A DNA stretch of 64,000 bases from contig OZ251252.1 of NCBI GenBank assembly GCA_965240325.2, positions 372,001-436,000 on the forward strand, in the 5' to 3' direction. How positions within the stretch are numbered: position 1 is the stretch's first letter; every line of letters begins with the position of its first letter. The position numbers and the translations under genes are program-made. This DNA is from Rebecca billardiae RCC1528 (taxonomy: Eukaryota > Protista > Haptophyta). The notes under the pieces were generated by a model that ran no database searches, was not told the origin of the DNA, and saw only the letters and a list, made by a program, of their open reading frames with translations. Of the stretch, positions 7,351-62,420 are shown piece after piece.

Positions 7351-7874
7351 TTATTCATCACTACCGGGATTCGCGTGGCGCGTCGCAGGCGCTTGCGATA
7401 TATGCCGCCGCATCATCATCAGCGCACACGATGACTCACACTATACTACGAGAGTACGAGTCACCGCGACTGTCAGTGACAGTGTCACGGATGGGCGCGC
7501 AGTATATATATCATCATCAGTGATTACAGCGCGCACGCGTCTACGCCGCGGCGCGGCATGCCCGATGTGATGATCGCCAGTGTCACGTACACTGTCAGTG
7601 TCAGCATCACGCGGCTGATGACGTGATGACATGTGTGACGCCGCGCCGCCCACGCGGTTGCGAGTGCGCGACGATGCGCGCGGGGCGGACGGTGAGTACT
7701 GAGTCTGAGTGCGAGCTCACTCTGCTCAGACTGCTGCCATCGGCATGCCACACGGCGGTTGACCGTGAGCCAACGGGCAGCGGCCCCTTCCCACGCGCCC
7801 GCAGCCCCTCCGCCCGCGCGCCGTCGGCGCGCGCGCGCGCTCGCTCAGTGGGGCCCACGCGGCGACGTCGGCGC

Positions 7875-8794: not shown

Positions 8795-8828
<34 letters not shown>

Positions 8829-10796: not shown

Positions 10797-11099
10797 CGGC
10801 GCCGCGCCCCTTCGCGCGCTCCGCGCGCGCCGCGGACGGCCGGTGGCTTCGGGGGGCGGGGCGTGTGCCCGCGCGCGTGCACAAGGCCCTGCTGGCGAGG
10901 TGCTCGTGTGCGCTGCTTCTGGGCGCCGCCCGGACCAGCGAGGCTGTAGTAACCACCACCAGCGGCAATTGGGCGGCGCTGCTCGCGGTCTTGTGATTGG
11001 CTGATTCTCATCCGGTAGAGTGGTCGCTGAACTGACGAGCGACGTGAGTAAAAAAACCGACTATCGCAGTATGGGGGTACAGTAGCTCGGAATTGATAC

Positions 11100-13925: not shown

Positions 13926-13956
<31 letters not shown>

Positions 13957-16475: not shown

Positions 16476-16525
<50 letters not shown>

Positions 16526-17389
16526 ACGCCGCGCCGCCGCGCCCGCGCTCGGCGCCGCCGGCGGGACGGCGCTCTTCAGAAACTGCTTGCCGCGGCCGGG
16601 CGCGGTGCGCGCGCGCGACGGGCTCGCCGGCATCGGCGGGAGGGCCGGCGCCTGCAGCGTCGGCGCCTCCAGGCTGAGGAGGCCGGCACGGCCCGCTCCG
16701 GGAGTGCCGCCGCCGGCCGCCGCGCCGCCGCGCGGCGGCGCGCCGCCTTGCGGCGGCGGCGGCGGCTGCTGCGGCTGCTGCAGCGCGGCGGCGGCGGCGG
16801 CGGGCGCGGGCGGCGACGCAGACCGCCGCATTGCGCCCGCGGGGCTCTGCGCGCTGCCGCGCCGGCTGGACGCTCGCGAGCCGCCGGCCGCGCGGCGCTG
16901 CTGGCCGGCCAGCGGCAGCTGCCCTTGCGGCCGAGGCTGCCTGGCGGCGGCGGCGGCGCCGCCGCCGCCGCTGCCGCCGCGCGCGTCTGCGGACGACACG
17001 GGCGTGCCGCCGCGCGGCTGCTCCGAGTCGTCGCCGTCGGCGGCGCCGTCGGCCGCCGCCGCGCCCGGGCTCCGCCTCCGCCGGCTGCTGAAGCTCATGC
17101 TCCCGCCGCCGCCAGTGGGCGTGCCGCCATTACTAGTAGTAGTAGTAGTAGCTGTAGTATCTCCAAAGATGATCTCGAGATTGTGCATCTCGTCTGCCGC
17201 CGCCGCCGCCGCCACCTCGGCCCACGCGCCGTTCTCGAGGGCGGCGGCGGCGGCGATCTCCTCGTCCTCGAGCGCGCGCAGCCGCGCGCCGAGCCACACC
17301 ATCGGCGGCGGCGCCGCGCTGAGCGCAAGCGCCGCCGCCGCCGCCGCCGATGTGCGCCGCCCGCGCGTGCCCTGAGTCCCGCTGAGCCC

Positions 17390-17424
<35 letters not shown>

Positions 17425-20740: not shown

Positions 20741-24781
<4,041 letters not shown>

Positions 24782-25146
24782 GCGCGACGCGCCAGGGCCG
24801 CCGCCTTCGTCGGGGTTGGTTGCGCCGCCGTGCCGTCGGGCCGGCGCCATCTTAGACTTATGTATCGACAGATCACTGCGAATGTCATCGGCCGAATCCG
24901 GAGTTGTGGATTGTGGAAGCAAACTTTCTCTCGGCCGACCCTCCGAAAGATGCAGGAATCCGGGTACCTGCTCTAGCAAGCAGCGTTGGCGGCTGATTAT
25001 TGGGCCGCACGGGTCGCCGCCTATTCATCGCGCCCAAACCTGGGCAGCCGTAGCCGCGGCTCATCACGGGAGCGCTGAGGAAGCGCGTGCGCAGCGCGAC
25101 GGCGCCAGACAGCGGGGGCGGCCATCAGCCACCGGGGCGCCGGCGG

Positions 25147-28485
<3,339 letters not shown>

Positions 28486-34331: not shown

Positions 34332-35767
34332 CGATGACGATGGCGCGGCAGACTCGCCGGCGTACGCGAGGCCATGGTGGCACTAGCTGCCATCGGGTAC
34401 CCGCGCCTGCTGCCAGGGGCTTCACTGATATATATAGTTCATATAGCGCTGATATGATCCGCGCAATATATAATCTGAAGAGCTACTCGGCTATAGCGGC
34501 GGGATCATATCGTCCTGCCATTCGATCGTCAGCTGGTGCGTCAGCTGCCATTCGGCTCAGGCTGTTACCATGCTGCAGCGATTGCAAGATTCGGGATGCC
34601 ATTGGCCCGGCAGCGTGGCCGGTGGGTACCGGCCTCATTATAATATGAATTTAATGATATGAGGATGCAGCAGCTAGTCAATATATGACGACTCAGAGTG
34701 AATGCAGCGGCAACTGCGCCCGCCTTCTCTGCCTGTAGCTCGACTCAGATGTGCTCTGATGCGGGCAACGGGCCGCAACGGTGGGGCAGCCGAGTGCTGC
34801 CGGCGTGTGGTCGTGCCGCGAGTGCCGCCGGACCGTTGACCGTGACAGGTCACATCCGCACAGAGGCAGTAGTGATGCATGAGGCGACTCGGATTTAGAT
34901 GGACTAGGTCGAATGCGCTGCATGCGGCTACACGCTGCCCCTGCGCCTGACTGTGCACTGTGAATGGTGCCGTGCAGCCGCCACGGACTACCCGTGTCGG
35001 AGAGCACGGCACGACAGAGCACAGCACGACTCCTGCGTTCGTGGCACACGCAAGACAGCATCCACGCCTGCATGGGTCGAGACGCACCTAACCAGCTATC
35101 CAGCGGGGAGCAGATACAGGTTTCACAGCCTCCCTCACGCAATGCACTCACAAAGTACCTCAGCAGAGCCGACGGAAGCGGCACGCGGATGCTGCGCGGC
35201 TTAAGCAGACGTTTGCGCGTCGCGCGCGATCGCGTGCATTGTGCAGGCCGCGACCCGGTGGACAATGCGGCGAGGGCCACGGCGAGGGTGCACGTTATCA
35301 TGCGCACCATGCCCAGCGAGATCCCCGCCGACGCACGAGCTTCTATGCCTCGCGGCGGAGGCCCGAAGCGACGCCATGCACAAGCCCTGGGACGGACGGG
35401 CCCGCTCATCTCAATGAGCGAATAAATACAACTGCTTTACATACTGGCATTACTCACAATACTGATGGCAATTCACTGAGATACACGCATCACGCGCTCA
35501 CTTTCAGGCCATCCTGTGAGCCGTCAAAGTATCAGTGTCCCCGTGCTGAGAATCCAGGACAGCAAGCCTGATCGCCCTGATGATGAATATGAGCTCTAAC
35601 CTACAGTTTACTATGTTTTAACGTGCACACTTGGTTAAGGCGCGATACCCACTTTCTGAACTCGCCCTGAACCCCCTGAGCAACCTCCTTAAGTTTAGTT
35701 TCATCCCTTTGCTTTGACGGACGCGGGCGTAGGACCGGACCACCGACGACGGCGGGCGTCTCATCAG

Positions 35768-37585
35768 ATGCTGCCGCCTCCCGCCCGGCGGGACAGCGAG
35801 GAGTACGCGCACGCGCTCGTCGCCGCGTGCGCGCAGCGCCAGTACGACCAGCTCGGCGACCTGCTCGGCGACGCCGACGCCGAGCGCGGGGCGGCCGCGG
35901 AGGAGATGCGCGCGGGCGCGTTCACGCCGCTGATGGTCGCGTGCCGCTCGGCGCACGCCAACCTGGCGGCGGCGCTGCTGAGGGGCGGCGCGGCGATCGA
36001 CGAGCCCTCGGCCGACGCGCGTACCGCGCTCATGCTCGCCGCCGAGCGCGGCCACGTCGAGTGCGTCGCCACGCTGCTCGCGGCGAGCGCGGACGTGCGC
36101 GCGAGCGACCGCGACGGCTGGGACGCGCTGATGCTGGCGGCGGCGGGCGGGCACGCGGAGGTGGTGAGCGTGCTCATACGCGCGCGCGCCGACGTGCGCA
36201 ACGCCGAGGCGGACGGCTGGACCGCGCTCATGCTCGGCTGCGAGAAGGGCGACGGCGAGACCGTCCGCCGGCTGCTCGACGGCGGCGCGCCGCACGGCGC
36301 CACGGACGCGTCGGGCGCGACCGCTCTGATGGTGGCGAGCCAAGAGGGGCACCGTGAGTGCGTGGTGGCGCTGCTCGACCGCGGCGCGGAGCTGCACGCG
36401 GCGAACAGGCACGGCCGCACCGCCGTCCTCGCCGCGTGCGAGGAGGGCCACGCCGCCGTCGTCGACGAGCTGCTGCGCCGCTGCCTCGCAACCCCTCCCT
36501 CGTGCGGCAGCCACTCGTTCGCTCCAGGTGGCTCGTCAGGCGCGCGGCGGCGGCCGACGCTGGCGACGCTGCTCGCGGCGGCGTGCAACGAGGGGCACGT
36601 GGAGGTGGCGCGGCTCCTCATCGCGCGCGGCGCCGACATGCGCACCACCAACGAGCTCGGCGCCACCCCGCTGATGCTCGCCGCGCAGGAGGGCCACGTG
36701 GAGTGCGTCGAGCTGCTCCTTGCGTGCTCCGCTGACGTCGGCCAGCAGAACGGGGACGGCTGGAGCGCGCTGATGATGGCGACGCAGGAGTCGCAGCTGC
36801 GCGTGATCCGGCTGCTGCTCGCCGCCGCAAGCCCCGCCGCCAGCCTCGAGTGCGCCAACTCGGAGGGCGGCACCGCGCTCGCCATCGCGTGCGAGTACTC
36901 GTCGCTGCCCGTGGTGTGCACGCTCAGCGCGGCGGGCGCTCAGCGCTTCTTTCCCAACGGCTTCACGGCGGAGGCGGTGGCGACGGCGGCGGCGCTGAGG
37001 CAGCCGGGCGCGCCGGAGCGCGTGCGCGTGCTCGAGTGGCTGCAGGCCACGCGCGAGTGGGCCACGCCGCTCCACCACGTGCCCATGCTCAGCGCGGCGC
37101 GCGCGACGCAGCTGCTGCGCGCGGGCGCGGACCCGCGCGCGCGCTCGAGCGCGCCGTTCGCGCCCACGCCCGTCGCGATCGCGCGCACCGTGCTCGCGGC
37201 GGACGCGGAGGCGGGCGGGTGGCGGCGGCGCGGTGCGGGCGCGGGTGCGCACGGCGCCGACGCCGAGCCCAACGCCGACGCCGACGACCACGCGCACGCG
37301 CCGGACGGCGGCGTGGGCGCCGCCGAGCTGATCGTTCGCGCCGCGGCGCCTTGGTCGCCCCGCTCGCACACGCTCTTCCCGGAGCGTGCGCGCGCGCGCG
37401 CGCGCGAGCTGCTCTTCGTCGGGTACCAGCTGGCGGCGCAGCCGGGGTTCGTGGGGCACTCGCAGCAGCTGGTCGACGTGTGGGTGGCGTACGTGCTGCC
37501 CGCCGCCGTGAGCCGCCCGCTGCCGCCGCGCGCACCCGCGCTCAGCTGGAGGCGCACGTTTGCGGGCGCGGCGCAGTGCTTGTAA
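35768..37585 (+). CDS. Ankyrin repeat protein
   Basis: Multiple TALMLAAxxGHxExVxxLL repeats; C-terminal TPLHH..WSPRSHTLFP segment; ATG at 35768. Confidence 0.93.
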   Translation: MLPPPARRDSEEYAHALVAACAQRQYDQLGDLLGDADAERGAAAEEMRAGAFTPLMVACRSAHANLAAALLRGGAAIDEPSADARTALMLAAERGHVECVATLLAASADVRASDRDGWDALMLAAAGGHAEVVSVLIRARADVRNAEADGWTALMLGCEKGDGETVRRLLDGGAPHGATDASGATALMVASQEGHRECVVALLDRGAELHAANRHGRTAVLAACEEGHAAVVDELLRRCLATPPSCGSHSFAPGGSSGARRRPTLATLLAAACNEGHVEVARLLIARGADMRTTNELGATPLMLAAQEGHVECVELLLACSADVGQQNGDGWSALMMATQESQLRVIRLLLAAASPAASLECANSEGGTALAIACEYSSLPVVCTLSAAGAQRFFPNGFTAEAVATAAALRQPGAPERVRVLEWLQATREWATPLHHVPMLSAARATQLLRAGADPRARSSAPFAPTPVAIARTVLAADAEAGGWRRRGAGAGAHGADAEPNADADDHAHAPDGGVGAAELIVRAAAPWSPRSHTLFPERARARARELLFVGYQLAAQPGFVGHSQQLVDVWVAYVLPAAVSRPLPPRAPALSWRRTFAGAAQCL

Positions 37586-44833: not shown

Positions 44834-46294
44834 TCAGCAGACACGAGCACGCCACGCCGTCTCGACGCACGCGGGCGTGGCAACCAGCTGGGTGGGCTCG
44901 TCTTGCTCGGCCGCGCTCATGCCGAGGCCGAGCGCAGCCGACCGCCTGCCGCACGCGTACACGCTGCCGTCCGAGCTCACGAACAGCGAGTGGGAGTAGC
45001 CCATGGCACAGTGCGCCACGCGTGCTTGAGCGAGGGCGTCGATACGAGCGGGTAGCCACCGTTCGCCGGCGCCATCGCACCCCAGCCGACCGTCCTCGTT
45101 GTTCCCAAACGTGTGCACGCTGCCTTCCGCGCCCAGCACCGCGCTGCTGTTGTAGCCGGCGCTGGCGCGCACTGCGAGCACATCAGCGGACGCCTCGATG
45201 CGCCGGGGCGTGGCAGGTGACCCACGGGCACCTTGGCCGAGCTTGCCGCGCCACCTGTCTCCAAACGAGTACACGCTGCCTGCTGCGTCCACCACCAGGC
45301 TGTGGTAGGCACCTGCGCTCACGTGCACGGCAGGCACGCCCGCAAGCGCCTCGATGAGCCTCGGCGTGGGCTGCTCCTGCCTGTCGCCGTGACCCAGCTG
45401 GTCGCAAGTGCCACGGCCGCACGAGTAGACGGCGCCACGCGTGGTCAGCAGCAGCGTGTGTGCATACCCCGCTGCAAGCATGCCCACGCGCTCGCCTCCG
45501 AGGCCCCTGACACGCGTGGGCTCCCGCCGGTTCGTGTGGCCGCCGTCGCCGAGCTGGCCGCAATCGTTCTCACCCCAGCTGTGCGCGCACCCAGCGGCTG
45601 TGAGCGCGAGGCTGTGGTAGTGGCCGGTCGCGATGGCGACGACGGGCTCGCTCGCGGGAAGCTTGACGAGAGCGAATGAACGCCGGTCCCTCGTGTCCCC
45701 CAGCCCCAGCTGGCCGTATCGGTTCCTGCCGCAGCCGTACACGGCGCCGGCCTCGCTGAGCGCGAGCAGGTGGTAGTGGGCAGCGGCCACTGAGCACAAG
45801 CGCACCGCGCTGAGGGAGGCGACGCGCGTCGGCACGCGCACTGCCGGCCTGCCCGAGAGTCCTGAAGCCACATGCGCCCGATACCCGCCCACCAGCCGCC
45901 CGAACTTGTCCCGCGCCTCCTCCTCGCCGCACGTGTGCAGCCTGCCCTCAGCGTCCACAATCGCGCTGAAGCCAAAGCCGGCCGCCACGGATAGCGAGCG
46001 CGCGCGTGCGACCTCAAGCAACCGCTCGCGTATGAACAGCTCCTCTGTCCATGTGCGCACGCCCGAGGGCAGCGACGCCGGCAGCGCGCGCTCGTGCCCC
46101 CGCGCGCGCACGCGCTCGCGCAGCGCGCGCTCGACCGGCGAGCGCTCGCCGGGCGGCGCGGCGTGGAAGAGGCACGCGGTGGCGTTCAGGCTGGCGAGGT
46201 CGCGCGGCGATATGAGCGGGATGATGCGCTCGAGCACCTCGCGTGGCAGGTCGTCGAACCCGGGGCGCGGTGCGTGCGTCCGTGCCGTGGCCAT
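44834..46294 (-). CDS. F-box + RCC1-repeat protein
   Basis: FDDLPREVLERII F-box; repeats GxYHSLALTxxGxVYSxGxNxxGQLG. Alternative upstream ATG at 46450. Confidence 0.88.
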   Translation of the reverse strand: MATARTHAPRPGFDDLPREVLERIIPLISPRDLASLNATACLFHAAPPGERSPVERALRERVRARGHERALPASLPSGVRTWTEELFIRERLLEVARARSLSVAAGFGFSAIVDAEGRLHTCGEEEARDKFGRLVGGYRAHVASGLSGRPAVRVPTRVASLSAVRLCSVAAAHYHLLALSEAGAVYGCGRNRYGQLGLGDTRDRRSFALVKLPASEPVVAIATGHYHSLALTAAGCAHSWGENDCGQLGDGGHTNRREPTRVRGLGGERVGMLAAGYAHTLLLTTRGAVYSCGRGTCDQLGHGDRQEQPTPRLIEALAGVPAVHVSAGAYHSLVVDAAGSVYSFGDRWRGKLGQGARGSPATPRRIEASADVLAVRASAGYNSSAVLGAEGSVHTFGNNEDGRLGCDGAGERWLPARIDALAQARVAHCAMGYSHSLFVSSDGSVYACGRRSAALGLGMSAAEQDEPTQLVATPACVETAWRARVC

Positions 46295-46470
46295 CGAGTC
46301 GAGCACGAGAAGACGAGGTGAGGGGCGAGCGGTCAGCGGAGGACGGTGCGCTGCTGAGGACAAAAGTGCCTGCTCTGTCCTCAAGTCCGGGCGGTGCCAC
46401 AACTCCAAGTCTCCAACAGGCAACACAGCTTCCGGACTACTGTCATTCATGCAGTGCGGTGACAGTTGGC

Positions 46471-46540
46471 GGGCGTCGATCTCGCCTGCCTGATTTGATG
46501 ATGATGAGCTGTGTGCGTCTCTTATTCTTAGTAAACTGTA
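46471..46540 (-). mobile_element. Isolated pogo/Tc2-like terminal inverted repeat
   Basis: Matches 58127-58182 apart from an internal gat-rich insert; reads TA|CAGTTTACTAAGAATAAGAGACGCAC on the minus strand. Confidence 0.5.
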
Positions 46541-47219
46541 GCTCGCAGTGCCCGCTGCCAGCCGCAGTAGTGCGGCGGCAGAGCAGTGTAATCCGAGCAG
46601 GTGAGCCGTTAGTCAAAGTTTATATTAGTGACCGTAGTACCGCCATTGTAGCAGCACTATTAGCCAGCCTCCGGGACCGCTAATGCCGATCACTCCGCGG
46701 TGCTGACCGACTGTGGCAATAACCATTATTATATGCTCAGTAACGACAGTAATGGCGGCGGCAAAGTCCCAGTCGAGGGTCATGCTGAGCAGTGAGCTCA
46801 GAGCTGCCTAGTACTGTAGTAGCTCACCTGGCCCGCACTGCGGGCACCGTGTCAACGTCACAGCCGGCTGAGGCCTGGCTGAGAATTAATGTGACGTATA
46901 CTAAATTATTATACGACATCTGAGTATACTCGTCGGTTTAATATTATAACTGAATTAACCGATACGACGTTCGACATTCACTGACTGTTCATATTTATTA
47001 TTATAAATGAAATCATAAGAAATGACATCACTGGTCCGAGCCTGCTGCTGTGTCGCTGCGGCTCGGACCAGTGATGTCATCGTCGCCGGCCGAGCTGCTC
47101 AGGCCCGCTGGGCCTACTCGACTGTCCGAATGTATGCTTGAGTATTGCAGAGGCGTAGCCTGCTCAATAGGCTGCTCATCACTATTCACTGCGAATATCC
47201 GGTATATACTCACTCACTG

Positions 47220-49069: not shown

Positions 49070-50980
49070 GTCCCGGGGGGCGAGTGGGGCGGTGAAGAAG
49101 ACTGCACGGACGGGTGGCAGACCGACCGACGACCGGCGAGTTCCGCGAAGCGACGAGTCAAACGGCCGCCGCGACAGGCCTCTGCAGCCTGCCACACCTC
49201 TTGTGGCATGGCCGCTCCAATATGTTACCCCACTGGCTCGCCGCGATGTGCGTCCGTCGGACAATGTGTTGACACATGGGGGCCCTGAGATTGAGGCAGA
49301 CCCTGCTGCGGGCAGTCGCACTGGTCACGGAGCTCACAACGGCATTACACAGTCAGACACTGGACAGCAGGCCACACAGCCACCTGCTGGCTCTGCCAAG
49401 ACACTGGCAGCCCCCAGGCGCAGGCTGCCTCCTCCTAGTCAAGCTCAGCAAGACAGCCCCCCGCCCAAACGACACTGCCCACCCCACCAGGCAAATGTGC
49501 CTATCCTAACACCAACTGGCAGGCAGGCTCAGCCTGCGCAACGAAGTATGCAACCCCCTGCAAAGAGCAGCAGAAAGAGGCGCGCAAACGACACCTCCCC
49601 AGGCGTATTAGCCATCGCCACCACTCTGCTTGCGTCCTACAGCGGCCCACGCCCTGACTTGATGCCCGATATCGCACACATGTCTGACATGACACCATCT
49701 GCCTCCATAGCAGCACGAGTGAAATACAGGCGCCTCACTGCCAGGACCAGTGGCCCAGACCCCTGCCCAGCTACTGGGCTCGCTGACAGCCCCCTCCGTC
49801 CCCTCCCCCGCGCAGGGATCGGCTAGTGGCTGGCCCTCTGCCCACACTGGGGCGCCCTAGGGGGTGCCCAGTCTGCCGACTCGGCTCAAACTCGATGATC
49901 TCGAATTGCAAGGCAGTGCACTGCTGGTACCTGGGACCACCCCACAGTGTTGGGCTTGTATGCTGTCGGCAATGGCATACCCCCGCCCCCTCTGGAGGCG
50001 GGCTGTCCACAGCGGAGTGGTGTCAAGGCACTTGGTGTATCGGTCAGTGGTTTGAGGTTGGGTGAGGGTGGTGGTTGGTTGGGGGCTGGCCAGGGTAGGG
50101 CTGGAGGCTTCGGCCGCCAGTCTGATCACCCGGAGCCCGTTATAAAGGGGAATTTATACGACCCGTTGCACGCGTGAGCGCCGAAAAAACGACACTTTGG
50201 CAGTGATAGTCATCAGCACCGTCGCCGCATCGTGGGCATGCCGCTGCCGCCGCCGGCGGCGGCAGCGGGAGCGTGGCAGCAGATCTACCACCTTCCGCGT
50301 TACGCGCTGCGTCGTGCGCGCCAGGTGGCAGGTTTCCCAGGTCCGCCGCGCGGAAGGCAGCGTGAGCGGTCGGCGAGCGCACGGAGATGAGAAGTAAGCG
50401 CGCATCGTGAGAGCTTCAGCAGCTTGCCCACGCGCTTCACGAAGGCGGTGTGGTTGCGTGCGCACGCCTTCTGTACCCGTACCCGCGATCAAAGCGTGAG
50501 CCACTCCCTAGGTCTTGCCTGCGCATCGCGGGCCGCGCCTCGTCTCCTGAATCCTCGTTCACGAGGACAGCACGTGTATCCGTGTACGCGCTCGCGGCCG
50601 ATGGCGGCTCCCCGCGTCGAGAGCCGTTTGGCTGGAGCCGCATCCAAGGGCATGTATCCTCACGGCCCCACCCGATGCTGACGCTGAGGTGGCGTGCTTG
50701 CCGAAGGTAGCCGCATTGGCTGATCTCTCTGCCTTTGGGCAACCCTTTGCAACCGCGCCGGCTCACGCTGCCAGCGCGCGCGCGGCGTGGCTTCGTGGTG
50801 GACACCTGCCCTGGGTTTTGTCGTTCGTTCTCAGCGACGGTTGGGTCGATTGACATGCGGATTGGATTGGTGCATTGCGAATCGGCTTCGCAATGCACCA
50901 TTGCGCTCGGATCGGCGCGGACGTCAGCCATGCGGCAGCGCGAGCGACAAAACCGCGAGATTTCATACGCTTGTCGTTTT

Positions 50981-51197
50981 TGGTGCGATAAACACCGAAG
51001 GCTGGTGGCAGCTTACTAATCAGAAGATGGCTCAAACAACCAGAGGTCACAGCACACCATGCATCGTGCCCGGACCGTGCGCGGTCCGGCAGTGCACAGA
51101 CTCACAGTGGACCGGATGTTCTTCCGGGTGAGGCGGCACTCGCCGCCGCAAGGGGAAGCGCATCAGCAGGCGGCTCCGAGTCGCAGCTGCATCGCGT
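50981..51197. repeat. Repeat A, copy 1 (217 bp)
   Basis: Identical by eye to 54993-55209. Confidence 0.96.
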
Positions 51198-51269
51198 TGC
51201 GTTGCCCCCCGGGGGCGCGGCGACGGCCTCGGCGAGCGTGCCCTTGGGGCCGCAGCTGGGCTCGCACAG

Positions 51270-54260
51270 CGACATGGCCCAGTCCTCGTGGCGCGATGGC
51301 CCGCGGGGATAGGGCCTCCCCCGACCGCCGGCTCTTCGCGGGTCGGCGAGGGTTGCCAACAACCTGCAACCCTGCAACCGAGAAGCGCTCGTTGCATTCC
51401 GCGGCGCTGCCGCAGACGGTCGGGGCGAGCGTGCCCTCGGGGCCGCCGTCGGTGTCTCATGGAGACAGGGTCCAGCCCTCGTGGCTCGATGGCCCGCTGG
51501 CGCTCTGGCCTACCTCAGTCGGCCCTTCGGGAGTCTGTGAGGGTTGCCTGCAACCTGCAACCGGGAAGCTCACGCCGCATATCGCGGTGCTGCAGCGGAC
51601 GGTTTGGGCGTGTGCGCCCTTGTGGCCGCCGCCGTTGTCTCATGGAGACAGGGTCCAGCCCTCGTGGCTCGATGGCCCGCTGGTGCTCTGGCCTGCCTCA
51701 GTCGGCTCTTCGTGAGTCGGTGAGGGTTGCCTGCAACCTGCAACCGGGAAGCTCACGCCGCATATCGCGGTGCTGCAGCGGACGGTCTGGGCGTGTGCGC
51801 CCTTGTGGCCGCCGCCGTCGTCTCATGGAGACAGGGTCCAGCCCTCGTGGCTCGATGGCCCGCTGGTGCTCTGGCCTGCCTCAGTCGGCTCTTCGTGAGT
51901 CGGTGAGGGTTGCCTGCAACCTGCAACCGGGAAGCTCACGCCGCATATCGCGGTGCTGCAGCGGACGGTCTGGGCGTGTGCGCCCTCGTGGCCGCCGCCG
52001 TCGTCTCATGGAGACAGGGTCCAGCCCTCGTGGCTCGATGGCCCGCTGGTGCTCTGGCCTACCTCAGTCGGTCCTTCGTGAGTCGGTGAGGGTTGCCTGC
52101 ACCTGCAACCGGGAAGCTCACGCAGCGTACAGCTGTGCTGCAGCGGCCGGTTTGGGTGTGTGTGCCCTTGTGGCCGCCGCCGTTGTCTCATGGAGACAGG
52201 GTCCAGCCCTCGTGGCTCGATGGCTCGCTGGTGCTCTGGCCTACCTCAGTCGGCTCTTCGTGAGTCGGTGAGGGTTGCCTGCAACCTGCAACCGGGAAGC
52301 TCACGCCGCATATCGCGGTGCTGCAGCGGACGGTTTGGGCGTGTGCGCCCTTGTGGCCGCCGCCGTTGTCTCATGGAGACAGGGTCCAGCCCTCGTGGCT
52401 CGATGGCCCGCTGGTGCTCTGGCCTGCCTCAGTCGGCTCTTCGTGAGTCGGTGAGGGTTGCCTGCAACCTGCAACCGGGAAGCTCACGCCGCATATCGCG
52501 GTGCTGCAGCGGACGGTCTGGGCGTGTGCGCCCTCGTGGCCGCCGCCGTCGTCTCATGGAGACAGGGTCCAGCCCTCGTGGCTCGATGGCCCGCTGGTGC
52601 TCTGGCCTACCTCAGTCGGTCCTTCGTGAGTCGGTGAGGGTTGCCTGCACCTGCAACCGGGAAGCTCACGCAGCGTACAGCTGTGCTGCAGCGGCCGGTT
52701 TGGGTGTGTGTGCCCTTGTGGCCGCCGCCGTTGTCTCATGGAGACAGGGTCCAGCCCTCGTGGCTCGATGGCTCGCTGGTGCTCTGGCCTGCCTCAGTCG
52801 GCTCTTCGTGAGTCGGTGAGGGTTGCCTGCAACCTGCAACCGGGAAGCTCACGCCGCATATCGCGGTGCTGCAGCGGACGGTTTGGGCGTGTGCGCCCTT
52901 GTGGCCGCCGCCGTTGTCTCATGGAGACAGGGTCCAGCCCTCGTGGCTCGATGGCCCGCTGGTGCTCTGGCCTGCCTCAGTCGGCTCTTCGTGAGTCGGT
53001 GAGGGTTGCCTGCAACCTGCAACCGGGAAGCTCACGCCGCATATCGCGGTGCTGCAGCGGACGGTCTGGGCGTGTGCGCCCTCGTGGCCGCCGCCGTCGT
53101 CTCATGGAGACAGGGTCCAGCCCTCGTGGCTCGATGGCCCGCTGGTGCTCTGGCCTACCACAGTCGGTCCTTCGGGAGTCGGTGAGGGTTGCCTGCACCT
53201 GCAACCGGGAAGCTCACGCAGCGTACAGCTGTGCTGCAGCGGCCGGTTTGGGTGTGTGTGCCCTTGTGGCCGCCGCCGTTGTCTCATGGAGACAGGGTCC
53301 AGCCCTCGTGGCTCGATGGCCCGCTGGTGCTCTGGCCTGCCTCAGTCCCGGGCTCTTCGTGAGTCGGTGAGGGTTGCCTGCAACCGCCTGCAACCTGGAA
53401 GCTCACGCAGCATTACATTGCGGTGCTGAGGCGCGGCGGACGGTCTGGGCGTGTGTGCCCTGGTGGCCGCCGGCGCCGTTCGGTCTCATGCTGAGACACG
53501 CGGGCGGTCCCGGCAGGCCCGTGTGGCTCGATGGCCCGCTGATGCTCGGGCCTACCTCAGTCCCGGGCTCTTCGTAAGTCGGTGAGGGCGTTGCCTGCAA
53601 CCGCCTGCAACCCCTGGAAGCTCACGCTAACACGCAGCACATTGCGCGGTGCTGTTCGGCGCGCGGACGGTCTGGGCGTGTGCGCCCTGGTGGCCACCGC
53701 CATCATGTCTCATGGAGACAGGGTCCAGTCATCTTGGCTTGATGGCCCGCTGGTGCTCGGGCCTCCCTCAGTCGGCTCTTCGTGAGTCGTCGGTGAGGGT
53801 TGCCTGCAGCCTTTATACCTCATTCGACCCTTCGTGCGTCTGTGAGGGTTGCATGCCTGCGACTTGCAGCTGAAAAGCTCGCGCAGCATCACTGCAGCAT
53901 GCAGCGGTGGCTGCAGCTTACGGTCTGGGCCGATGAGTGTGCCCTCGTGGCAGCTGCGTTGTCTCATGGAGACAGGGCCCAGCCCTCATGGCTCGATGGC
54001 CAGCTGGTGCTCTGGCCTCCCTCAGTGGCCCTCCGGGAGTCGGTGAGGCTGGCCGAGTGCAGCCTGCAACCAGGACTGGCTCACGCTGCATACTGAAGCT
54101 GGGCTGCAGCGGGCGCGGGTCCGGTCCGAGTGGGCGTGTGCGCCCTCTGGGCAGTTATCTCCTCATGGAGATAGGTTTCAGCCCTCGTGGCTCGATGGCC
54201 AGCTGGTGCTCGGGCCTACCTCACTCGGCTCTTCGTGAGTCGGTGAGGGGTGCCTGCATC
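51270..54260. repeat. 183-bp tandem array, ~16 units, with a 548-bp three-unit higher-order repeat
   Basis: ATGGAGA anchor at 51459, 51642, 51825, 52008, 52190, 52373, 52556, 52738, 52921, 53104, 53286, then degenerate units at ~53488, 53712, 53966, 54165. Confidence 0.97.
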
Positions 54261-54653
54261 AAGGCTCGAGCAGTTCGCGTGCGCTGGACTGACTCGTGCG
54301 CACTAGCGGTGGGGCATGCCATTGCGCACACCGGCGGTCAACGGACCGACTCGCCAGCGGGGAGGCAGGACTACTCGAACAAGGGACTGCCCCCGCTGCC
54401 GCAGCCAGTGCCAGCAGTCGGGCACTGGCAGCGCAGATAGCACCTGATGGTGCTATCTGGCCGGTGATGGCCATCAGGCGCGCATGCTCCACAGTGATGC
54501 ATGCGGCACTGTGCTGCATCATACATACTATGCAGCGAGCAGGCCAGAAGTGGCCGAGCAGACCTCTGCAGTCTCCCTGTGCGCCATCTGAGGCAGCGAT
54601 GGGAAGGGATGACGCCGGGTGCGGGCAACCGCAGTGGCCAGGAGGGCAATCAA

Positions 54654-54993
54654 TGGGGCTAGGGCGGCCACACGCCCGCACTCACACCCAGCCGACGCGG
54701 CTGCTGCCGACAGCGCAGCGCCGGTCGGCAGGATGAATGCGGGCGGAGGGGCCGTCCGTTCCTGGCAATGCCTCATCCCTCTAATCCCATGCAAGCCTCC
54801 GCTTAAGGCGGCAGGCAAGGCATAGGGTCTGCTCATCTCTATTCCATAATCCATATGCTGATCATCAGCAGTTGGATAAGTGATATGGTTGATTGGCTGA
54901 CAGCCACGTCAGCGCCGCCGTTGAGGCCCATTTGAGATGGGCAGCGCAGCTGACTCAGTCAGGGGACCTGGTTGACCCAGATGCCTGATTAGT
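54654..54993. repeat. Repeat B, copy 1 (340 bp)
   Basis: Matches 57642-57974 except for a 7-bp indel near 54845. Confidence 0.96.
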
Positions 54994-55209
54994 GGTGCGA
55001 TAAACACCGAAGGCTGGTGGCAGCTTACTAATCAGAAGATGGCTCAAACAACCAGAGGTCACAGCACACCATGCATCGTGCCCGGACCGTGCGCGGTCCG
55101 GCAGTGCACAGACTCACAGTGGACCGGATGTTCTTCCGGGTGAGGCGGCACTCGCCGCCGCAAGGGGAAGCGCATCAGCAGGCGGCTCCGAGTCGCAGCT
55201 GCATCGCGT
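54993..55209. repeat. Repeat A, copy 2
   Basis: Directly abuts B1, sharing one T. Confidence 0.96.
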
Positions 55210-55299
55210 CCCACCCAACCCACCCTACACAAGGAAGCTGCAGTGCAGTCATATCGTCTACTCATCATTGGACGTGTGATCCCCACCTGAGTCTGACCC

Positions 55300-56232
55300 T
55301 GCCTTGCGCTTCCCGCGGCCGTCGCCAGCCTTCGGCTTTGCTTCTGCTGCACATGGAGGAAGCGGCACCCCACCTTGGGGCAGCTGCCGCTCCGCTGGAA
55401 CGAGTGGCACACGCCCGTGACTGGTCGTCTCGGAGCGCTGGCACGAGGGCCGTGTCGTTCACCTCGTCCAGCACCATGTGCTCAGGGAGCAGGGCACGCG
55501 CACTGCTCACGCCCCTCCGGCGATGGCACGGATGCCCCGGCGGCGAGGACGTCCGAGAACTGCGGGAACGGCGGCACTTGGCCGCCGGAGATCTCTCCGA
55601 GTGCCCGGGGAGCTTCTTCGAGGCGTTGAGCGGCCCGGGCAGCAGGACGATCGAGACGGTCTGGTCGTTGACAAGGTGGGCCTCCTGCCACACGCAGCCT
55701 TTGGTCAGCAGCTGCTGGGGCTTCTCGTCCTTCGTGGGCCGCGATGGCTCCCGCCGGAGCCGAGGCGCCTCGTCACGCGGCGGCGGCAGTGTTGCGGGCG
55801 CCAACGTCGGCATGGCGGCGGCGGTGATCGTTGACATCTCCCGCTGCTCCGCCGACCGATCGGCTGATCGTCACTTCGACTTGGCCGTTGCGGGCGGCCA
55901 GCGTCGCGCTCTCGAAGGCGTCCGCCCACGGGCCGTCGCCCGGGGCGGGCGCCGTCCTCAGCGTCTCGATCACCTGGTTCGTCAGGCCGCGGTCGCTCTC
56001 GGCGCCGGCGACCCCGAGCAGCTGCAGCAGGCGGCAGGCCGCGTGCCCGCAGCCCCTGACGGCAGCAGCGCGGCGGGCCGCGCGTGCGCGACGCACCCGG
56101 CGCCGGCTCGGCGCCGGTGGCGTCCAAGGCGAGTTTCACCGCCGCCACCGCGTTCGCGCGAGCGCGCGCCACTGCGGCCGCCAATTCGTCGGGCGCCAGC
56201 GGCGCGTCGGCGGGGTTGGGGACGGCTGCCAT
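55300..56232 (-). pseudogene. Frameshifted gag-like ORF ending in a CCCH zinc finger
   Basis: ATG at 56232 (MAAVPNPADAPL); protein-like segments spread across several minus frames; CHSFQRSGSCPKVGCRFLH at ~55350-55410. Confidence 0.55.
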
Positions 56233-56350
56233 CGGGGCGCTCGTTGCGCGGCGGCTGATTTCCCGCCCGCGGCCCCGGCCGCACGGTGACCCTGCGCACC
56301 CCGGACACCCGGGGTCTTTCGGTCCCGGATCGGCCGTCCGCACATGCGGC

Positions 56351-57641
56351 ATGGCGGCCGGTGAGTTCGGCGTCGCAGCGGACGCACAGCGCCGGGAGGC
56401 GGTGCGCGCGCAACGCGACGTTATGCGCCGGCCGCCCGTCCACCAGGCGGCGACGTCGGTCATCCCAGGCCTGGTGGTGGCCACCGCATACCAGCGGCCG
56501 ACGCTCAAGCAGCAGCAGTGGCACTCCCAGGATCGAGGCCGCGTGCCAGATGGAGCACCCCTTCAACGCGCCTGTGCTCGGCCTGGCACTCGACATGCGC
56601 GCGGCGGCCTCGTGGATCTGTGCACCAAGAGGCACCTCGGTCCACGACGCCCGACTGGCTTGGTTCCACACCGTGAGAGGTGGCGGACAGCCTGTCTGGC
56701 TGGTCGGCTGAACTGCGTCAGCTCGGACCGGGTTCCATCCGCCGACCCGAGCGGGTCTTCGGAACGCGGAATGGTAAGACCGTCGGCAAGCCCCATGTGG
56801 CTTTCATCTGGTCTGCGGTGTCCAGTGCGTGGGCAATTGCGCGGACAGCGGAGTCTTCCGAGCAGATGCGCAGCACGCCTGCCTCCGCATGGCGGACCTG
56901 GATCACGCCGGGTGGGATGCGGCGGTGGAGGAGCAACTCCAATCCCAGGCTGCCGGCGCCGCTCACGCAGACGTCCTTGAAGCACTGTGGGCCCACACCC
57001 AGCAGGAGGTGCAGGACTGATGGGCGGCGGAGATCGGCTCGTCGCCAGACGTCGATCGCCTCTTCGGCAGGCACAAGTGGCGTGCCCATAATCCGCCGCG
57101 GGGTGCCACAAGGCGGCAGGGTCAGCCCATGCGACAACGCCAAGGCCTCCTTGCACAACTCGTGTACAACGTTGCACGAACGGCTTCGGTGCACCTTGGG
57201 CGATTTCCCGGCAGGGGCGGCTGCCCTGTTCAGCGACGTGCTGGGACAGCTGGGCCACTCTGGATGGTCTATGATGCTGGGCATCGAGGACATGGAAGCA
57301 GGGTATCGCCTGATCCAGTGCTCTCAGCCACGATTCACGTTGCTCGCGCACTGGGACCCATTCCGCTGACGTGTGGTGTTCTTTCGCCTCCAGGGGTCAA
57401 CTCTGGCCTGAAGAGCGCGGTCATCCAATTCAATCGCCTGGCTGAGTTCGTCACCAGGGTCGCAGTGCTGGCGCTTCCCATCTGTGTGGGGCACTACTTT
57501 GAGTAGGACTTTGCTGTGTGTGAGCCCACCTTTGCGAAAGGAGGGCAGGGGCTGCTGGTGGACCTGGGCCTCCTTATGGGCTTCCAGGTCAACCAGGCCA
57601 AGTCTGGTGAAAACCTTCCTAAGGGTCATACACGACTTCTC
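56351..57641 (+). pseudogene. Decayed, 3'-truncated reverse transcriptase of DIRS/Ngaro type
   Basis: Across plus frames: LWAHTQQEVQD*W, RRGVPQGGRVSPCDN, DMEAGYRLIQ (57289), GLKSAVIQFNR, HYFE*DF (57492; YxDD site). Cut off by repeat B2. Confidence 0.78.
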
Positions 57642-57974
57642 TGGGGCTAGGGCGGCCACACGCCCGCACTCACACCCAGCCGACGCGGCTGCTGCCGACA
57701 GCGCAGCGCCGGTCGGCAGGATGAATGCGGGCGGAGGGGCCGTCCGTTCCTGGCAATGCCTCATCCCTCTAATCCCATGCAAGCCTCCGCTTAAGGCGGC
57801 AGGCAAGGCATAGGGTCTGCTCATCTCTATTCCATATGCTGATCATCAGCAGTTGGATAAGTGATATGGTTGATTGGCTGACAGCCACGTCAGCGCCGCC
57901 GTTGAGGCCCATTTGAGATGGGCAGCGCAGCTGACTCAGTCAGGGGACCTGGTTGACCCAGATGCCTGATTAGT
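57642..57974. repeat. Repeat B, copy 2 (333 bp)
   Basis: Matches 54654-54993. Confidence 0.96.
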
Positions 57975-58133
57975 TCATACGCTCACGGTTACTCACCCGT
58001 GCAACATACAGGGTTACTTACGTAGTACTACTAGTACTACAGTCAGTCCGACAGAGTCGGTCACTGGTACACTGTACAGTAATTAACGGAGTATGTTCGT
58101 CAATCTTGATGATGATGACAAACGTAGGGCGTC

Positions 58134-58243
58134 AATCTCGCCTGCCTGAGCTGTGTGCGTCTCTTATTCTTAGTAAACTGTACATGCAGTTTTTACTAAG
58201 AATAAGAGACGCACACAGCCTCAGGCACTAGGCAGGCGAGATT
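58134..58243. repeat. ~110-bp imperfect palindrome made of two back-to-back TIR-like arms
   Basis: aatctcgcctgcc..tagtaaactg|tacatg|cagtttttactaag..ggcaggcgagatt. Confidence 0.9.
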
Positions 58244-58741
58244 CAGTAGACTGAACATGACAATGGCGGCGTGATACAGTACGATGATCATCGCTGCGCC
58301 GTCATCGAGTAACAACCCTGCCTGGCTGGCGCCAACGATCGGGCCCAGTGCTCGGCCAATAATAAAGTCCACAACGTTGGTCACACACTGCCACGCGCGC
58401 CGCGTCCCCAAGGCAAACGGCCTGCCTTCTTCCGCGCCGGCGCGTCGCCTGCACGTCGGCGGCCCCCGGCCCGCCGCGTCGGCGTCATCCGCCACGTCAC
58501 CCCGTCGCCATCGCGCGCGGCGTGGCGCCAGTAGCGGACTCATCCCGGTCGCGCCGGCGGCGCAGCGTGGCTTCCACCCGTGGCGTGCGCTCGCTGACGA
58601 TCGCCGCTGCCATCAGCCGGCGGCTCACCCACACGGGCCACGGGCCACAGAGCCCCGGCCCACAGCCCCAGAAGCGGTGCCGGCCACGGGGGCGGCGCGC
58701 GGTCGGTCGACGGGCTTGCCGGGGGGCGCGAGCGCGTGGGC

Positions 58742-61700
58742 TCACGCCGCTGCGTTCACCGCCGCCGCCTCCGCCCCCGCCTGGTACGCGGCCGGTGTGG
58801 CGTGGGGCGCGGGCGAGGGCGCCGCCGAGTAGCCCGCCGAGCCGACGGAGGGCGAGCGAGGTCCGGCGCCGTGCGCGCCCGCGCCGCTGCCGGCTGAGAG
58901 GCCCTGCGTGGCGCGCGCCGCGCCGTGCGCGCCGTGCTGCGCGCCTGAGGACGAGGAGCCCAGCCAGCTGTAGCCCGCCCCATCGGCGCCGTTGGCGTAC
59001 GCGTACGCGCCGTCCGCGCTGCTGCTGCCGCCGTCGTCGCTCGGCTGCAGCAGCGGCGCGAGCGCGTCGTGCACCGCCTGCGCAGCGGCGCGGCGGGAGC
59101 AGCAGCGCGCGGCGCAGGCGGGCCAAGCCAAGGCATCGCGGGGCGGGGCGGGGCGTGGGCGAGTCAGAGGGAGCTCGGAGGGAGCTCGCGCGGCAGGGGC
59201 CCGCCTGCGCCCGCGTGGACGGGCGTGTGTGTGTGTGTGGACCGGCGCAGCACGCATGGCGTGTGCGCGCGCGCAGGCAGCGCAGCGCGCTCGGGCGCGG
59301 GGGAGAGCAGAGCAAGCGCACGCGCACCGTGGCGGAGCCGAGGCCGAGGCCAGGGCCTGCGTGCCCGTGCCTGCCACCGCCGCCGCCGCCGCCGCCGCCG
59401 CCGAAGTTCGAGGCGCGCTGCGGCGGCGCGATGCCGTCGGCGCCCGGCGCAGCGCCCGCGCGCGCGGCCGAGCGCTGCAGCAGGTGCGCGAGCGGCGGCG
59501 CGTGCGCCCCGGCGGGGCCGGTCGAGACGCGCGCCGCGCCGTGGCCTCCCGCCCCAAACTGCTTGAGGGGCCGGCTCATCTCGAAGAGGGGCTCCGCCGT
59601 CGTGCGGCGCTGGCTACTGGAGGGCGCGCTGTTGTCGGCCGGCGTGTCGGGCGGCGCGGCGGAGGCGGGCGGGGTGGCGGCGGCACCGCCGCCGCCGCCG
59701 CGCGCGTGCGCCGAGGCGGGCGGCGAAGACATCACGCCGCGCAGCGCCGCGGCAAAGCTCAGATGACTCTCAGCGCCGTGCGCCTCGGCGCGCTCGGGCG
59801 CGGCGCCGCCCTCGGCGGCCGCGGCCGCGCCACGCCCGCCGGCGGTGCCGCCACCAAAGTACGCGGTGCCGCCGGCGGCGGCGCGCTCGGCGTCGGAGGC
59901 GTCGGCAGCCGAGCGCTCCGCCGCCGCGTCCACATCGCGGTCGGGGTCGGTGCCGTGCGGCGGCGAGCGCGCCGCGTGCGCACCACCGGCTTGAGGCGTC
60001 GCCAGCGCGCCGCCGGCGCCGGGCGCGAAGGAGCTGGGGCGGCCGCTCGGCGCGGCGGTGCCGCCGCCCGCGCCGCTGGCGAGCGTGGACGAAGAGACGC
60101 GCGCGTGCGCGTGCGGCGGCGTGGACAACATGGACGCCCACGGCTGCTGCGGCTGCTGCGCGCCCGCCGCAGCCGCGGACTGGCCCATCGGCCCAAAGGC
60201 ACCCAGGGAGAAGCCGCGCGCCGACCCGCCGCCGAGGCCGGCGCTCGCGTCGGCGGCGGCGCCGCCGAGCCCGCTGCCGCCGCCGCCGACGGAGGAGGGG
60301 AGCGAGGTGCGCGCGCCGCCGAGGCTCGGCGCGCCGTATGCGCCGCCGGCGCCCAGCCCGGGGATCCACTTGGGCTGCGGCGCGTGGGCGCCGGCGCCCG
60401 CCGCGCCAGCGAGCCCTGCGCTGTACGCGCCGGCGCCCTTGCCGGGCGTGCCCGCGCTGCCCGCGGCGCCGCCCGCTCCGGCCGAGGCGGCGCTGAGGGG
60501 CGAGCGGAAGGTGGTCGACGCGGAGGAGAGCGCGAGCGAGACGGCGCTCGCCGGCGAGCCGCTCAGCCGCCCGAGCTGCGCGTCGTTCACCTCGCGGTTC
60601 AGCCACTGGATCACCTGCGCGGCAGCGGAGGGCGCGCGGCGCGACCGGCGGCGGGCGCGGGCGGGGGCGGGCGTGGGCGGGGGCGGCGGCGGGCGTGGGC
60701 GTGGGCGGCGGCGGGCGCGCGAGCGAGCACGCGGGCCGGTGAGTGCAGGCGCGGGCGGTGCACGCGCGCAGACGAGGGGGGAAGCGCCCGGGCGCGGCGT
60801 CGCGCGCGGTAGCGCCCGCGCACCTGCTGGTTCGCCTGCAGCTGCGCGTGCGCCTCCTCCAGCTGCCGCGCCGCCTCGGCCGCGCGCTCGTCCGAGCGCT
60901 CGCGCGCCGCGGCCGCCTGCGCCATCTCGGCGCGCAGCCGCTCGAGCGCGAGGTGCGACTCGTCGAGGGCGCGCTGCTTCTCGGCGGCGAGCTCCTCGGC
61001 CTTCTCCGCCTTCTCCCCCTTCACCTTCGCGCGCGCCCGAGCCGCGCGCCCGTCCGCCTGCAGCTTCTCGATGATCTCGTTCCCCTTTTGGATCTCAGAG
61101 GCGGCCGCACTCAGCTTGGCGTCCAACCGGTCGGCGCGCGCGCGGCTCTCGGCGAGCGCGGCGTCGGAGGCGCGCTTGGACTCGGAGGCGGCGTCGAGCA
61201 GGGCCTGGGTCTTCGCCGCGAGCTGCTCCTTGTCGCCCACCGCCTGGTTCAGCGCGGACAGCTCGAGCGCCGCCGCGTGCGCCTCGCTCTCAAGCGCGCG
61301 CACGCGCGAGCGCAGCGTGCCCGCCTCGGCGCGCAGCGCGCCCGCCTCCTCCTTGCTCGCGCCGCCGTCGGCCTCGGCGGCGGCGAGGCGCGTGGCGGTG
61401 GCGGCGGCGCGCATCTCGAGCTCGTGCTTCTCCGCCGTCAGCTTCTCGCACGCCGCACTCGCCGCCGCGAGCGCGCTGCGCGCCTCGCCGAGCTCGGCGG
61501 CGGCGCGCGCGCGCTCGGCGCCGAGCGCGTCCGCGGCGGCGCGCTCCGCCGCCGAGAGCGCCGCCGTGGCCTCCTCGCGCGCGGCGGCGAGGTCCTGCGC
61601 GCGGCGCGCCTCGGCGTCGCGCGCCGCGGCGTCGCGGTGCGCGCGCTCCGCCACGAGCGCCTCGTGCGCCTCGCGCCCCGCGCGCTGCGCCTCGTCGCGC

Positions 61701-62221
61701 GCGGCGCCGACGCGCGCGAGCTGCTCGCGATTCGCCTCCGCCTCCGCGCGCAGCGTGCGCACGACCGCGGAGAGGTGGGCGCGGAGCGCGCCGTCGGTGG
61801 CGGGGCGGACCTTGAGCGAGAGGTGCGGCAGCTGCGAGAACGAGTTGATCTCGTGCACCGCGAACGTCGGGCCCTGCGGCAGGCAGCGCAGCGTCGCGGT
61901 GAACGCGGGCCGCTCGTCGGCCGCCGCGCGCACGCAGCGCTCGAGCAGCTCAGAGAGCTTGGGCGTGAACTGCTGGAAGTCGACGAGCAGGTTGTGCTCG
62001 GCCTTGATCGCGTGGTAGTCGTCCTCCGAGATCTCCAGCGTGTACAGCAGCAGCGCGTCCTCCGGGTCGGTGAGCTGCAGCCGCAGCACCTTGGGCGAGC
62101 GCGGCGAAGGCGCCGACTGCGCGATGCGCACGCTCAGCCGGGCGAGGCGGTCCTCGCGCTCGGGCACCTTGACGCGCGTGGGCACCTCGGACGAGTAGAG
62201 CAGCTCGTCTACCGCGGACAT
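58742..62221 (-). CDS. SAS6: Centriole cartwheel protein SAS-6; 3 exons (62221-60824, 60614-59328, 59077-58742)
   Basis: Head domain LQLTDPEDALLLYTLEISEDDYHAIKAEHNLLVDFQQF, coiled coil with EIQKGNEIIEKLQ, and NQQ|VIQWLNREVN across intron 60615-60823. The second intron (59078-59327) is less certain. Confidence 0.92.
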
Positions 62222-62420
62222 CGCGGACGAGCGGCGCGCCGCGGCCCGGGCTCGCCTGGCGCTGCGCGCGGGCAACTCAAAAGGCGATGGAGCGCAGCCT
62301 GCGCTGCCAACGGTGGGCACACAGGGCCTCGGCCGGTGGCACGGGAAAGCTCAAACGAGTCCGGGCGTGGTGTCCATGACACTGCGTCATCCGGACCGCA
62401 GCACTCAGCAGCGCATCGAA

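Follow-up and report, generated by a model that had tools for sequence, protein, structure and literature searches.

A 64,000-nucleotide stretch of the haptophyte Rebecca billardiae RCC1528 (GenBank assembly GCA_965240325.2, contig OZ251252.1, positions 372,001 to 436,000; hereafter the window, numbered from its first letter) contains a 7.0-kb feature that is probably one decayed, non-autonomous copy of a two-compartment tyrosine-recombinase (YR) retroelement family, the intact relatives of which apparently make up a very divergent and uncurated family. The window copy keeps all of the repeats, namely a left repeat (A1), an internal B1|A2 junction with its hairpin, and a right repeat (B2); it has no DUF4326 gene, no RNase H and no recombinase gene (orfX), and its reverse transcriptase (RT) is broken. 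As the copy encodes none of the enzymes, only mobilisation in trans would be open to it, and given its near-identical repeats we consider a non-autonomous copy mobilised in trans to be the best reading. YR retroelements are rare and poorly understood, and to our knowledge the model of their replication (end rejoining on an internal template, followed by site-specific integration) is largely untested outside Dictyostelium.

Repeat architecture and flanks of the window copy

Coordinates of the A and B repeats were obtained by repeat finding and self-blastn on the window, and the tandem array was characterized with Tandem Repeats Finder (TRF; Table 1). An earlier note on this DNA, made from its letters alone, had described split direct repeats with an internal B1|A2 join and an array between A1 and B1, and this description holds: there are two 217-bp copies of A and two copies of B (340 and 333 nt), no further copy of either is found elsewhere in the window by self-blastn, and the array has a period of 183 bp in 13.1 copies. 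B1 and B2 differ by no substitution and by a single 7-bp indel near 54848, B1 abuts A2 with one T at 54993 common to both, and the start of A1 carries the family-conserved motif T..GCGATAAAC..GAAG, which is also kept in the related loci L002, L009 and L015. The array, with its core at 51363-53812 (89% matches), has a higher-order period of three units (548 bp); the copies of this longer unit begin at 51736, 52284 and 52832 and agree with one another at 99-100%. The RNA fold of the 183-bp unit is not unusual (z -0.4 and -1.6), Rfam has no match to the array, and a hidden Markov model (HMM) found no orfX remnant in the array compartment. The A1-B1 and A2-B2 compartments of the copy have only A and B in common.

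The outer limits given in the earlier note, 50972 and 57983, match an exact 10-bp direct duplication, TTCATACGCT, that flanks the feature. A1 itself begins at 50981, after nine extra bases (TGTCGTTTT) that are either filler or original target sequence; this nonamer is not present at the internal B1|A2 junction. When the flanks were shuffled 200,000 times by mononucleotide, such a 10-mer was placed no more than 40 nt from the left end in 4 shuffles (a chance of ~2e-5). Among the relatives, L015 has an imperfect version of the flanking duplication and L009 has none. The duplication may have pre-existed in the target, or the insertion may have taken another route.

Two candidate identities were dropped. 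A tRNA primer-binding site at the start of A (the reverse complement of which ends ..TCGCACCA) was rejected because the other three lineages have no CCA-complement, and identity as a retrozyme or Penelope was rejected since no hammerhead or other ribozyme was found in an Rfam E-value scan of 50000-59000 or in a gathering-threshold scan of the whole window. Outside the element, two 13-nt arms that pair perfectly around a 5-nt loop (GGTGCATTGCGAA / TTCGCAATGCACC) form an inverted repeat at 50869-50899, ~80 nt to the left, and a near-perfect palindromic hairpin of ~90 nt lies at 58139-58231, 160 nt to the right in an AT-richer flank (GC 0.50). Rfam mir-44 matches this hairpin on either strand, below threshold (40 bits versus a gathering score of 54).

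Table 1. Features of the window and of the intact relative L015
Sequence	Feature	Position	Strand	Remarks
Window	Left copy of 10-bp flanking direct duplication	50962-50971	.	TTCATACGCT; direct reading
Window	Nine bases between left duplication copy and A1	50972-50980	.	TGTCGTTTT; filler or original target sequence
Window	A1, left terminal repeat	50981-51197	+	217 nt; 100% identity with A2
Window	183-bp tandem array, including degenerate units at both ends	51219-54268	+	Repeat finding
Window	Unique spacer, array to B1	54269-54653	+	385 bp; no repeat, no homology found
Window	B1, internal right-repeat copy	54654-54993	+	340 nt; family-conserved ...GATTAG ends at 54992
Window	Junction-spanning inverted repeat	54985-54993 and 55027-55035	+	9-nt arms, 100% complementary, 33 nt apart
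Window	A2, internal left-repeat copy	54993-55209	+	217 nt; 100% identity with A1
Window	Expected position of antisense gag-like gene	55210-56386	-	Synteny with relatives; broken into at least 3 frames
Window	pol remnant (N-terminal helical domain and RT motifs A-E)	56387-57641	+	phmmer, tblastn, family profile
Window	B2, right terminal repeat	57642-57974	+	333 nt; begins exactly at the pol truncation point
Window	Right copy of 10-bp flanking direct duplication	57974-57983	.	TTCATACGCT; direct reading
L015	A1	2504-2713
L015	orfX	3732-5771	+
L015	B1	5928-6055
L015	A2	6054-6263		Overlaps B1 by 2 nt
L015	DUF4326	6366-6806	-
L015	gag	6945-8312	-
L015	pol	8473-10893	+
L015	B2	11078-11205
Window	Tubulin-tyrosine ligase family protein	25054-28482	+
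Window	Ankyrin-repeat protein	35699-37582	+
Window	RCC1-repeat protein	44837-46612	-
Window	SAS-6	60614-62350	-

Coding remnants

The pol remnant was searched solely as its natural pieces between stops, by phmmer in a set of 1.84 billion proteins and by means of a pol family profile built from relatives. The piece 56677-57366 (+) matched 128 cluster representatives (best E 1e-24), all of these matches falling on its last ~90 residues, and the pieces scored 4e-34, 1e-15, 2e-12, 4e-5 and 1e-4 against the profile. Taken together the remnant aligns to residues ~4-460 of an RT-RNase H family of ~770 residues with E values of 1e-24 to 1e-34 (residues 5-455 of the relative P0005 by tblastn; positions 4-462 of 755 in the profile). 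The RT remnant suspected in the earlier note is therefore real, and Pfam alone is blind to it, giving no match in the eight ATG-started open reading frames (ORFs) of 55071-57813. Its decay, and the absence of RNase H and recombinase from the copy, had likewise been read correctly: there are four in-frame stops (56709, 56775, 57018 and 57504) and the reading frame shifts four times or more (near 56433-56578, ~57086, ~57366-57390 and ~57600). Homology runs through the palm motifs of the RT, of which the N-terminal two-thirds are kept, and breaks off with ..VIHDFS where B2 begins, the RNase H half being deleted. The distance from A2 to B2 is 2.4 kb in the window and 4.8 kb in L015. An all-helical N-terminal domain of ~260 residues (P0005 1-260), confidently modelled and conserved in the family, precedes the RT, and in the window it is present in broken form at 56387-57080.

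Between A2 and pol, a zinc-knuckle-like motif (C-x2-F-x3-G-x-C-x4-C-x3-H) is found at 55353-55409 (-), where synteny puts the C-terminus of gag, and its pattern agrees with the C-termini of the gag-like proteins of the family. Upstream pieces from 17 loci had no significant tblastn match to the element, and the identification of gag in the window from the knuckle motif and synteny is weak. A gag on the plus strand, beside the RT as in the earlier note, is not supported, gag being on the minus strand in all relatives where it was detected, and the knuckle motif of the window is on the minus strand as well.

Genes of the intact relatives

The earlier note had suggested a search for intact copies, and among 53 loci of relatives that we collected from metagenome contigs there are copies that encode an RT-RNase H pol together with an orfX of predicted tyrosine-recombinase fold. 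The pol relatives are metagenome proteins of ~770-800 residues, almost without Pfam annotation. An AlphaFold2 model of P0005, built on a 30-sequence alignment (predicted local distance difference test, pLDDT, 88.6; predicted template modelling score 0.88), matched the RTs of Moloney murine leukaemia virus, cauliflower mosaic virus, Ty3, human immunodeficiency virus and human endogenous retrovirus K in the PDB at E 1e-10 to 1e-7, and caulimovirid, retroviral and hepadnaviral polymerases in BFVD. RNase H-like motifs were read from the alignment in the C-terminal third. On this model the family pol is an RT-RNase H of the LTR (long terminal repeat)/retroviral type. No useful match came from PDB sequence searches that started from P0005, from the gag of L002 or from the orfX profile, and the pol profile found only the cauliflower mosaic virus RT (E 0.04).

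In all loci with a detected gag, the gag-like gene (-) lies directly upstream of pol (+) in divergent orientation, across an intergenic region of 160-360 bp; its product combines a coiled coil with a knuckle near the C-terminus, of the form C-x2-W-x3-G-x-C-x7-9-C-x3-5-H. A gag antisense to pol is new here. Often present too is a minus-strand DUF4326 gene for 129-146 residues (for example L002 2686-3075). DUF4326 belongs to the rhodanese-phosphatase clade, is proposed to process ADP-ribose-linked phosphates, and occurs in phages and giant viruses (PMC9503650). In P0018 and P0053 Pfam places DUF4326 within the same predicted protein as pol, and one relative, P0039, has a C-terminal SET domain. 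Pfam found no rve integrase, protease or methyltransferase domain in 30 pol proteins or in any ORF of L015, where DUF4326 is present in place of a methyltransferase.

The plus-strand gene orfX (~680 residues) was detected in 14 loci and has neither a Pfam nor a PDB sequence match. In its model (24 sequences; pLDDT 70.8) the N-terminal 165 residues are disordered, and nearly every one of the ~40 best PDB matches is a tyrosine recombinase or a protelomerase (Flp, Cre/Tre, IntI, TelK, lambda Int and Xer), with Foldseek probabilities of up to 1.0, target-normalised TM-scores of 0.5-0.56 and E values of 0.007-0.1. R392, K422, H519, H522, W553 and Y612 are invariant, in an R..K..HxxH..W..Y pattern. 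From this model orfX appears to be a predicted tyrosine-recombinase-fold protein. Both the RT and the recombinase of the family fall below the thresholds of Pfam RVT_1 and Phage_integrase.

Two-compartment layout of the family

L015, a 40-kb JGI contig, and L013, from an independent ENA assembly, hold the same element with host genes on both sides (Table 1), A being 210 bp and B 128 bp in two copies each, with all copies 100% identical. The same A1-[X]-B1A2-[Y]-B2 pattern is seen in L009/L010, with host flanks in L009, and in L002-L004. Since these loci share the layout, the normal integrated form of the family is A1-[orfX]-B1|A2-[DUF4326(-), gag-like(-), pol(+)]-B2, and the array of the window copy occupies the compartment that carries the recombinase gene in intact relatives. 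The earlier note had offered two readings, one of a split-repeat element and the other of two head-to-tail units with common ends; both describe the object, but as the autonomous relatives L015/L013 and L009 themselves consist of two A..B compartments, the two are the same thing and not alternatives.

Satellite arrays seem to accompany the family, as a 147-bp tandem array lies just outside the element, left of A1, in L009 (2352-4366) and L026 (3758-5803); it is unrelated in sequence to the 183-bp array of the window. Locus L007 (40-8008) comprises two head-to-tail copies of a degenerate relative with a 4767-bp period, 99.8% identical, in which pol and gag are broken. Topology read from short metagenome contigs calls for caution: L026 and L037 are 99% identical rightwards from A and unrelated left of A, so that either the loci are polymorphic or the assembly switched where A is repeated.

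A covarying hairpin at the B|A junction

Four lineages, with pol identities of only ~45%, have a B that ends with ..RTTAG and an A that begins with T..(C/G)GA(T/C)AAC..GAAG. When scanned with a simple pattern of this motif, each locus gave a match at its B|A junction and nowhere else, and the window gave a single match. Spanning the junction is an inverted repeat (Table 1), the 5' arm of which consists of the end of B and the first T of A, with the 3' arm ~33 nt into A. Over the small sample of four aligned sequences, 36 of 36 cells of this stem are paired, with compensatory changes in 4 of the 9 pairs; the covariation score was matched by none of 500 shuffles, and control stems slid along the alignment paired only 25-47%. 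This covarying 9-bp stem across the B|A junction in four lineages is new here. The stem is complete only where B joins A, each integrated terminus carrying one half, in the manner of attL and attR relative to attP. The bases common to the left flank, the junction and the right flank number only one or two: T for the window, TT for L015 and TA for L009.

Relation to known elements

Terminal repeats together with an internal copy of the joined ends, the criterion for the DIRS order, were found in the window, L015 and L009. The closest known layouts are those of Kangaroo from Volvox and nematode Pat1, PAT-like elements of the DIRS order (a group that also takes in Toc). In both, the internal repeats separate the methyltransferase from the recombinase, and in Kangaroo one gene is inverted (PMC4157794). 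The likeness extends to split direct repeats of the form A1..B1A2..B2, to the inverted gene of Kangaroo and to an RT-RNase H of the LTR/retroviral type (PMC4157794). In contrast to both, the family has its recombinase compartment first, and it is gag and DUF4326 that are inverted, not the recombinase.

Ngaro elements, such as those of Cafeteria burkhardae, and VIPER/TATE resemble the family as YR retroelements with A/B split repeats, no methyltransferase, non-autonomous derivatives (SIRE) and solo AB repeats (PMC6681497; PMC8547959). The layout of Ngaro and VIPER is nevertheless A1-[ORFs]-B1A2B2, with gag, RT/RNase H and YR all on one strand (PMC6681497; PMC8547959), whereas gag and DUF4326 of the family are antisense; the Ngaro pattern of internal repeats downstream of the recombinase with genes on one strand was not found in the family. 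The Cafeteria Ngaros also match PF00078, PF17919 and PF00589 (PMC8547959), and the family does not. Of the PAT/Ngaro topology proposed in the earlier note, the PAT-type part (Pat1, Kangaroo; PMC4157794) therefore stands and the Ngaro part does not. Membership in PAT or Ngaro does not follow from this, given that no methyltransferase domain was found in the family and that its RT and recombinase are too divergent for Pfam.

DIRS-1 of Dictyostelium shares with the family an internal sequence that reproduces the joined ends, there essential for retrotransposition, and a short match of element and target at the junction, like the 1-2 common bases of the family (PMC7192593). It differs in having inverted terminal repeats and an internal complementary region in place of direct A/B repeats. 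The family was compared by description only with TOC1 of Chlamydomonas reinhardtii, from another host lineage. The LTRs of TOC1 are split, with lengths of 217 and 237 bp. Like the window copy, TOC1 is a non-autonomous DIRS-order element in which the unusual terminal repeats are preserved, and it relies on other elements (PMC9940879). The hallmarks of LTR retrotransposons (Ty3, Ty1 and Bel), namely identical LTRs at the ends, an rve integrase and a 4-6-bp duplication, were not found, and neither were those of Penelope-like elements and retrozymes (a hammerhead in the repeats or a GIY-YIG endonuclease), the Rfam scans being without a ribozyme.

Proposed mechanism and alternative explanations

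If the Cappello/Poulter model of DIRS and PAT elements is taken as an analogy (PMC7192593), a transcript that spans A1 to B2 would be copied by the RT-RNase H, and the internal B1|A2 junction would serve as the template on which the two ends are rejoined, rebuilding the junction hairpin (...TTAG|T...). The recombinase would then exchange the rebuilt TTAG|T site with a target that has 1-2 bases in common with it. Expression of gag and DUF4326 would require an antisense transcript from the gag-pol intergenic region. On the same model the window copy would have been moved by the proteins of an autonomous relative, and the near-identity of A1 with A2 and of B1 with B2 suggests that such mobilisation may have been recent.

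Several observations weigh against this account. Only one copy of the element lies within the window, gag is not statistically detectable there (best E 0.26 with the gag HMM), and YR integration does not predict an exact 10-bp duplication at the flanks together with a 9-nt spacer. The assignment of the recombinase, moreover, comes from a medium-confidence model (pLDDT 70.8) with Foldseek E values of 0.007-0.1 and no Pfam or PDB sequence match, and judging from motif order, not from superposition, His seems to take the place of the second catalytic Arg in 24 of 24 orfX sequences.

That the two compartments share nothing but A and B, that the first is without a trace of orfX, and that head-to-tail tandem relatives exist (L007, with its 4767-bp period) would also fit a history without a two-compartment ancestor, in which a non-autonomous A-array-B unit and an A-gag/pol-B unit were joined head to tail, two circles having recombined at B|A or the RT having jumped end to end between templates, and were inserted together. 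We regard such a joining as unlikely, since the autonomous relatives L015/L013 and L009 already have two compartments in the same order between host flanks, so that descent with replacement of orfX is simpler; the precise junction also has the same form as in the relatives. A little less probable again is an insertion made without a recombinase, whereby read-through RNA or cDNA entering a staggered break through target-primed reverse transcription or end joining would yield a 10-bp target duplication and a 9-nt filler. The exact duplication at the ends and the 9-nt 5' spacer (chance ~2e-5) speak for this route, as does the weaker, imperfect version of the duplication in L015, yet the element ends exactly at a TTAG|T junction that is conserved in four lineages, has no poly(A) and no 5' truncation, and the duplication, absent from L009, could have pre-existed in the target.

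The B1+A2 segment does resemble a complete LTR, and in L001 repeats of at least 520 bp surround a pol-only unit of 2.98 kb, so an ordinary LTR tandem was also weighed, with a 557-bp LTR made of B+A, a middle LTR common to two elements and truncated outer LTRs. We hold this to be very improbable: neither a B to the left of A1 nor an A to the right of B2 is present in the window, L015 or L009 (the latter two with host flanks), rve integrase and protease were found nowhere in the family, and truncations exactly at the B|A boundary would be needed on both sides in independent lineages. More improbable still is that a collapsed or duplicated repeat made the A/B pattern during assembly. Near-identical repeats are where assemblers err, and some short contigs of relatives end inside repeats (L002, L018 and L024), but B1 and B2 differ by the 7-bp indel and stand in different contexts, and the same topology appears between unique flanks in independent assemblies (L013 from ENA, L015 from JGI). 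A decayed two-compartment copy moved in trans thus remains our preferred reading.

More tentatively, and with the odds in our judgement somewhat against it, the relatives could represent a previously undescribed clade of YR retroelements from GC-rich marine and freshwater protists, probably including haptophytes, that would join five features: (i) an RT-RNase H and a recombinase too divergent for Pfam; (ii) a zinc-knuckle gag-like gene antisense to pol with a shared intergenic region; (iii) an accessory DUF4326 gene, with a possible role against a host defence that is based on ADP-ribose; (iv) a split-repeat genome of two compartments; and (v) a covarying hairpin that exists only once the ends are joined and that would act as recombination site. 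If this is true, the window copy would be a satellite-carrying parasite of the clade. The family offers a compact, testable version of the replication model, with a conserved TTAG|T, a 9-bp stem of the joined ends and a separate recombinase compartment, and natural non-autonomous derivatives such as the window copy keep every repeat. It also indicates that standard domain libraries miss whole retroelement lineages in protists, places a putative ADP-ribose-processing domain of the phage and giant-virus type inside a retrotransposon, and would explain a class of 'LTR-like' repeats with an internal satellite array in the annotation of GC-rich haptophytes.

Genomic context

The window has a GC content of roughly 72% (mean of 2-kb windows), and its host genes, among them flagellar or centriolar ones (tubulin-tyrosine ligase and SAS-6), are long, intron-free ORFs with a GC content at third codon positions (GC3) of 0.8-0.95 (Table 1). 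The only close relative found for SAS-6 is from Pavlovales sp. CCMP2436 (58% identity), and an exact look-up of the SAS-6 product returned no record. The GC content fits Diacronema lutheri, with 73.3% GC and 45% single-exon genes (PMC11347835; PMC8379373); in the genome paper of that species, repeat annotation was purely de novo and used RepeatModeler and RepeatMasker (PMC8379373). Judged by these features the host is probably a pavlovophyte haptophyte. A Cafeteria host, considered on the strength of GC content, was dropped in view of the SAS-6 relative. A region of 81-82% GC contains an open frame of 2366 codons (11513-18610, minus strand; GC3 0.91). Finally, the segment 21000-24000 is of odd composition, with an AT skew of -0.36 at 22001-24000 and overlapping long ORFs of extreme codon-position GC (for example 0.93/0.94/0.29), and looks like low-complexity coding sequence beside a radical-SAM match.

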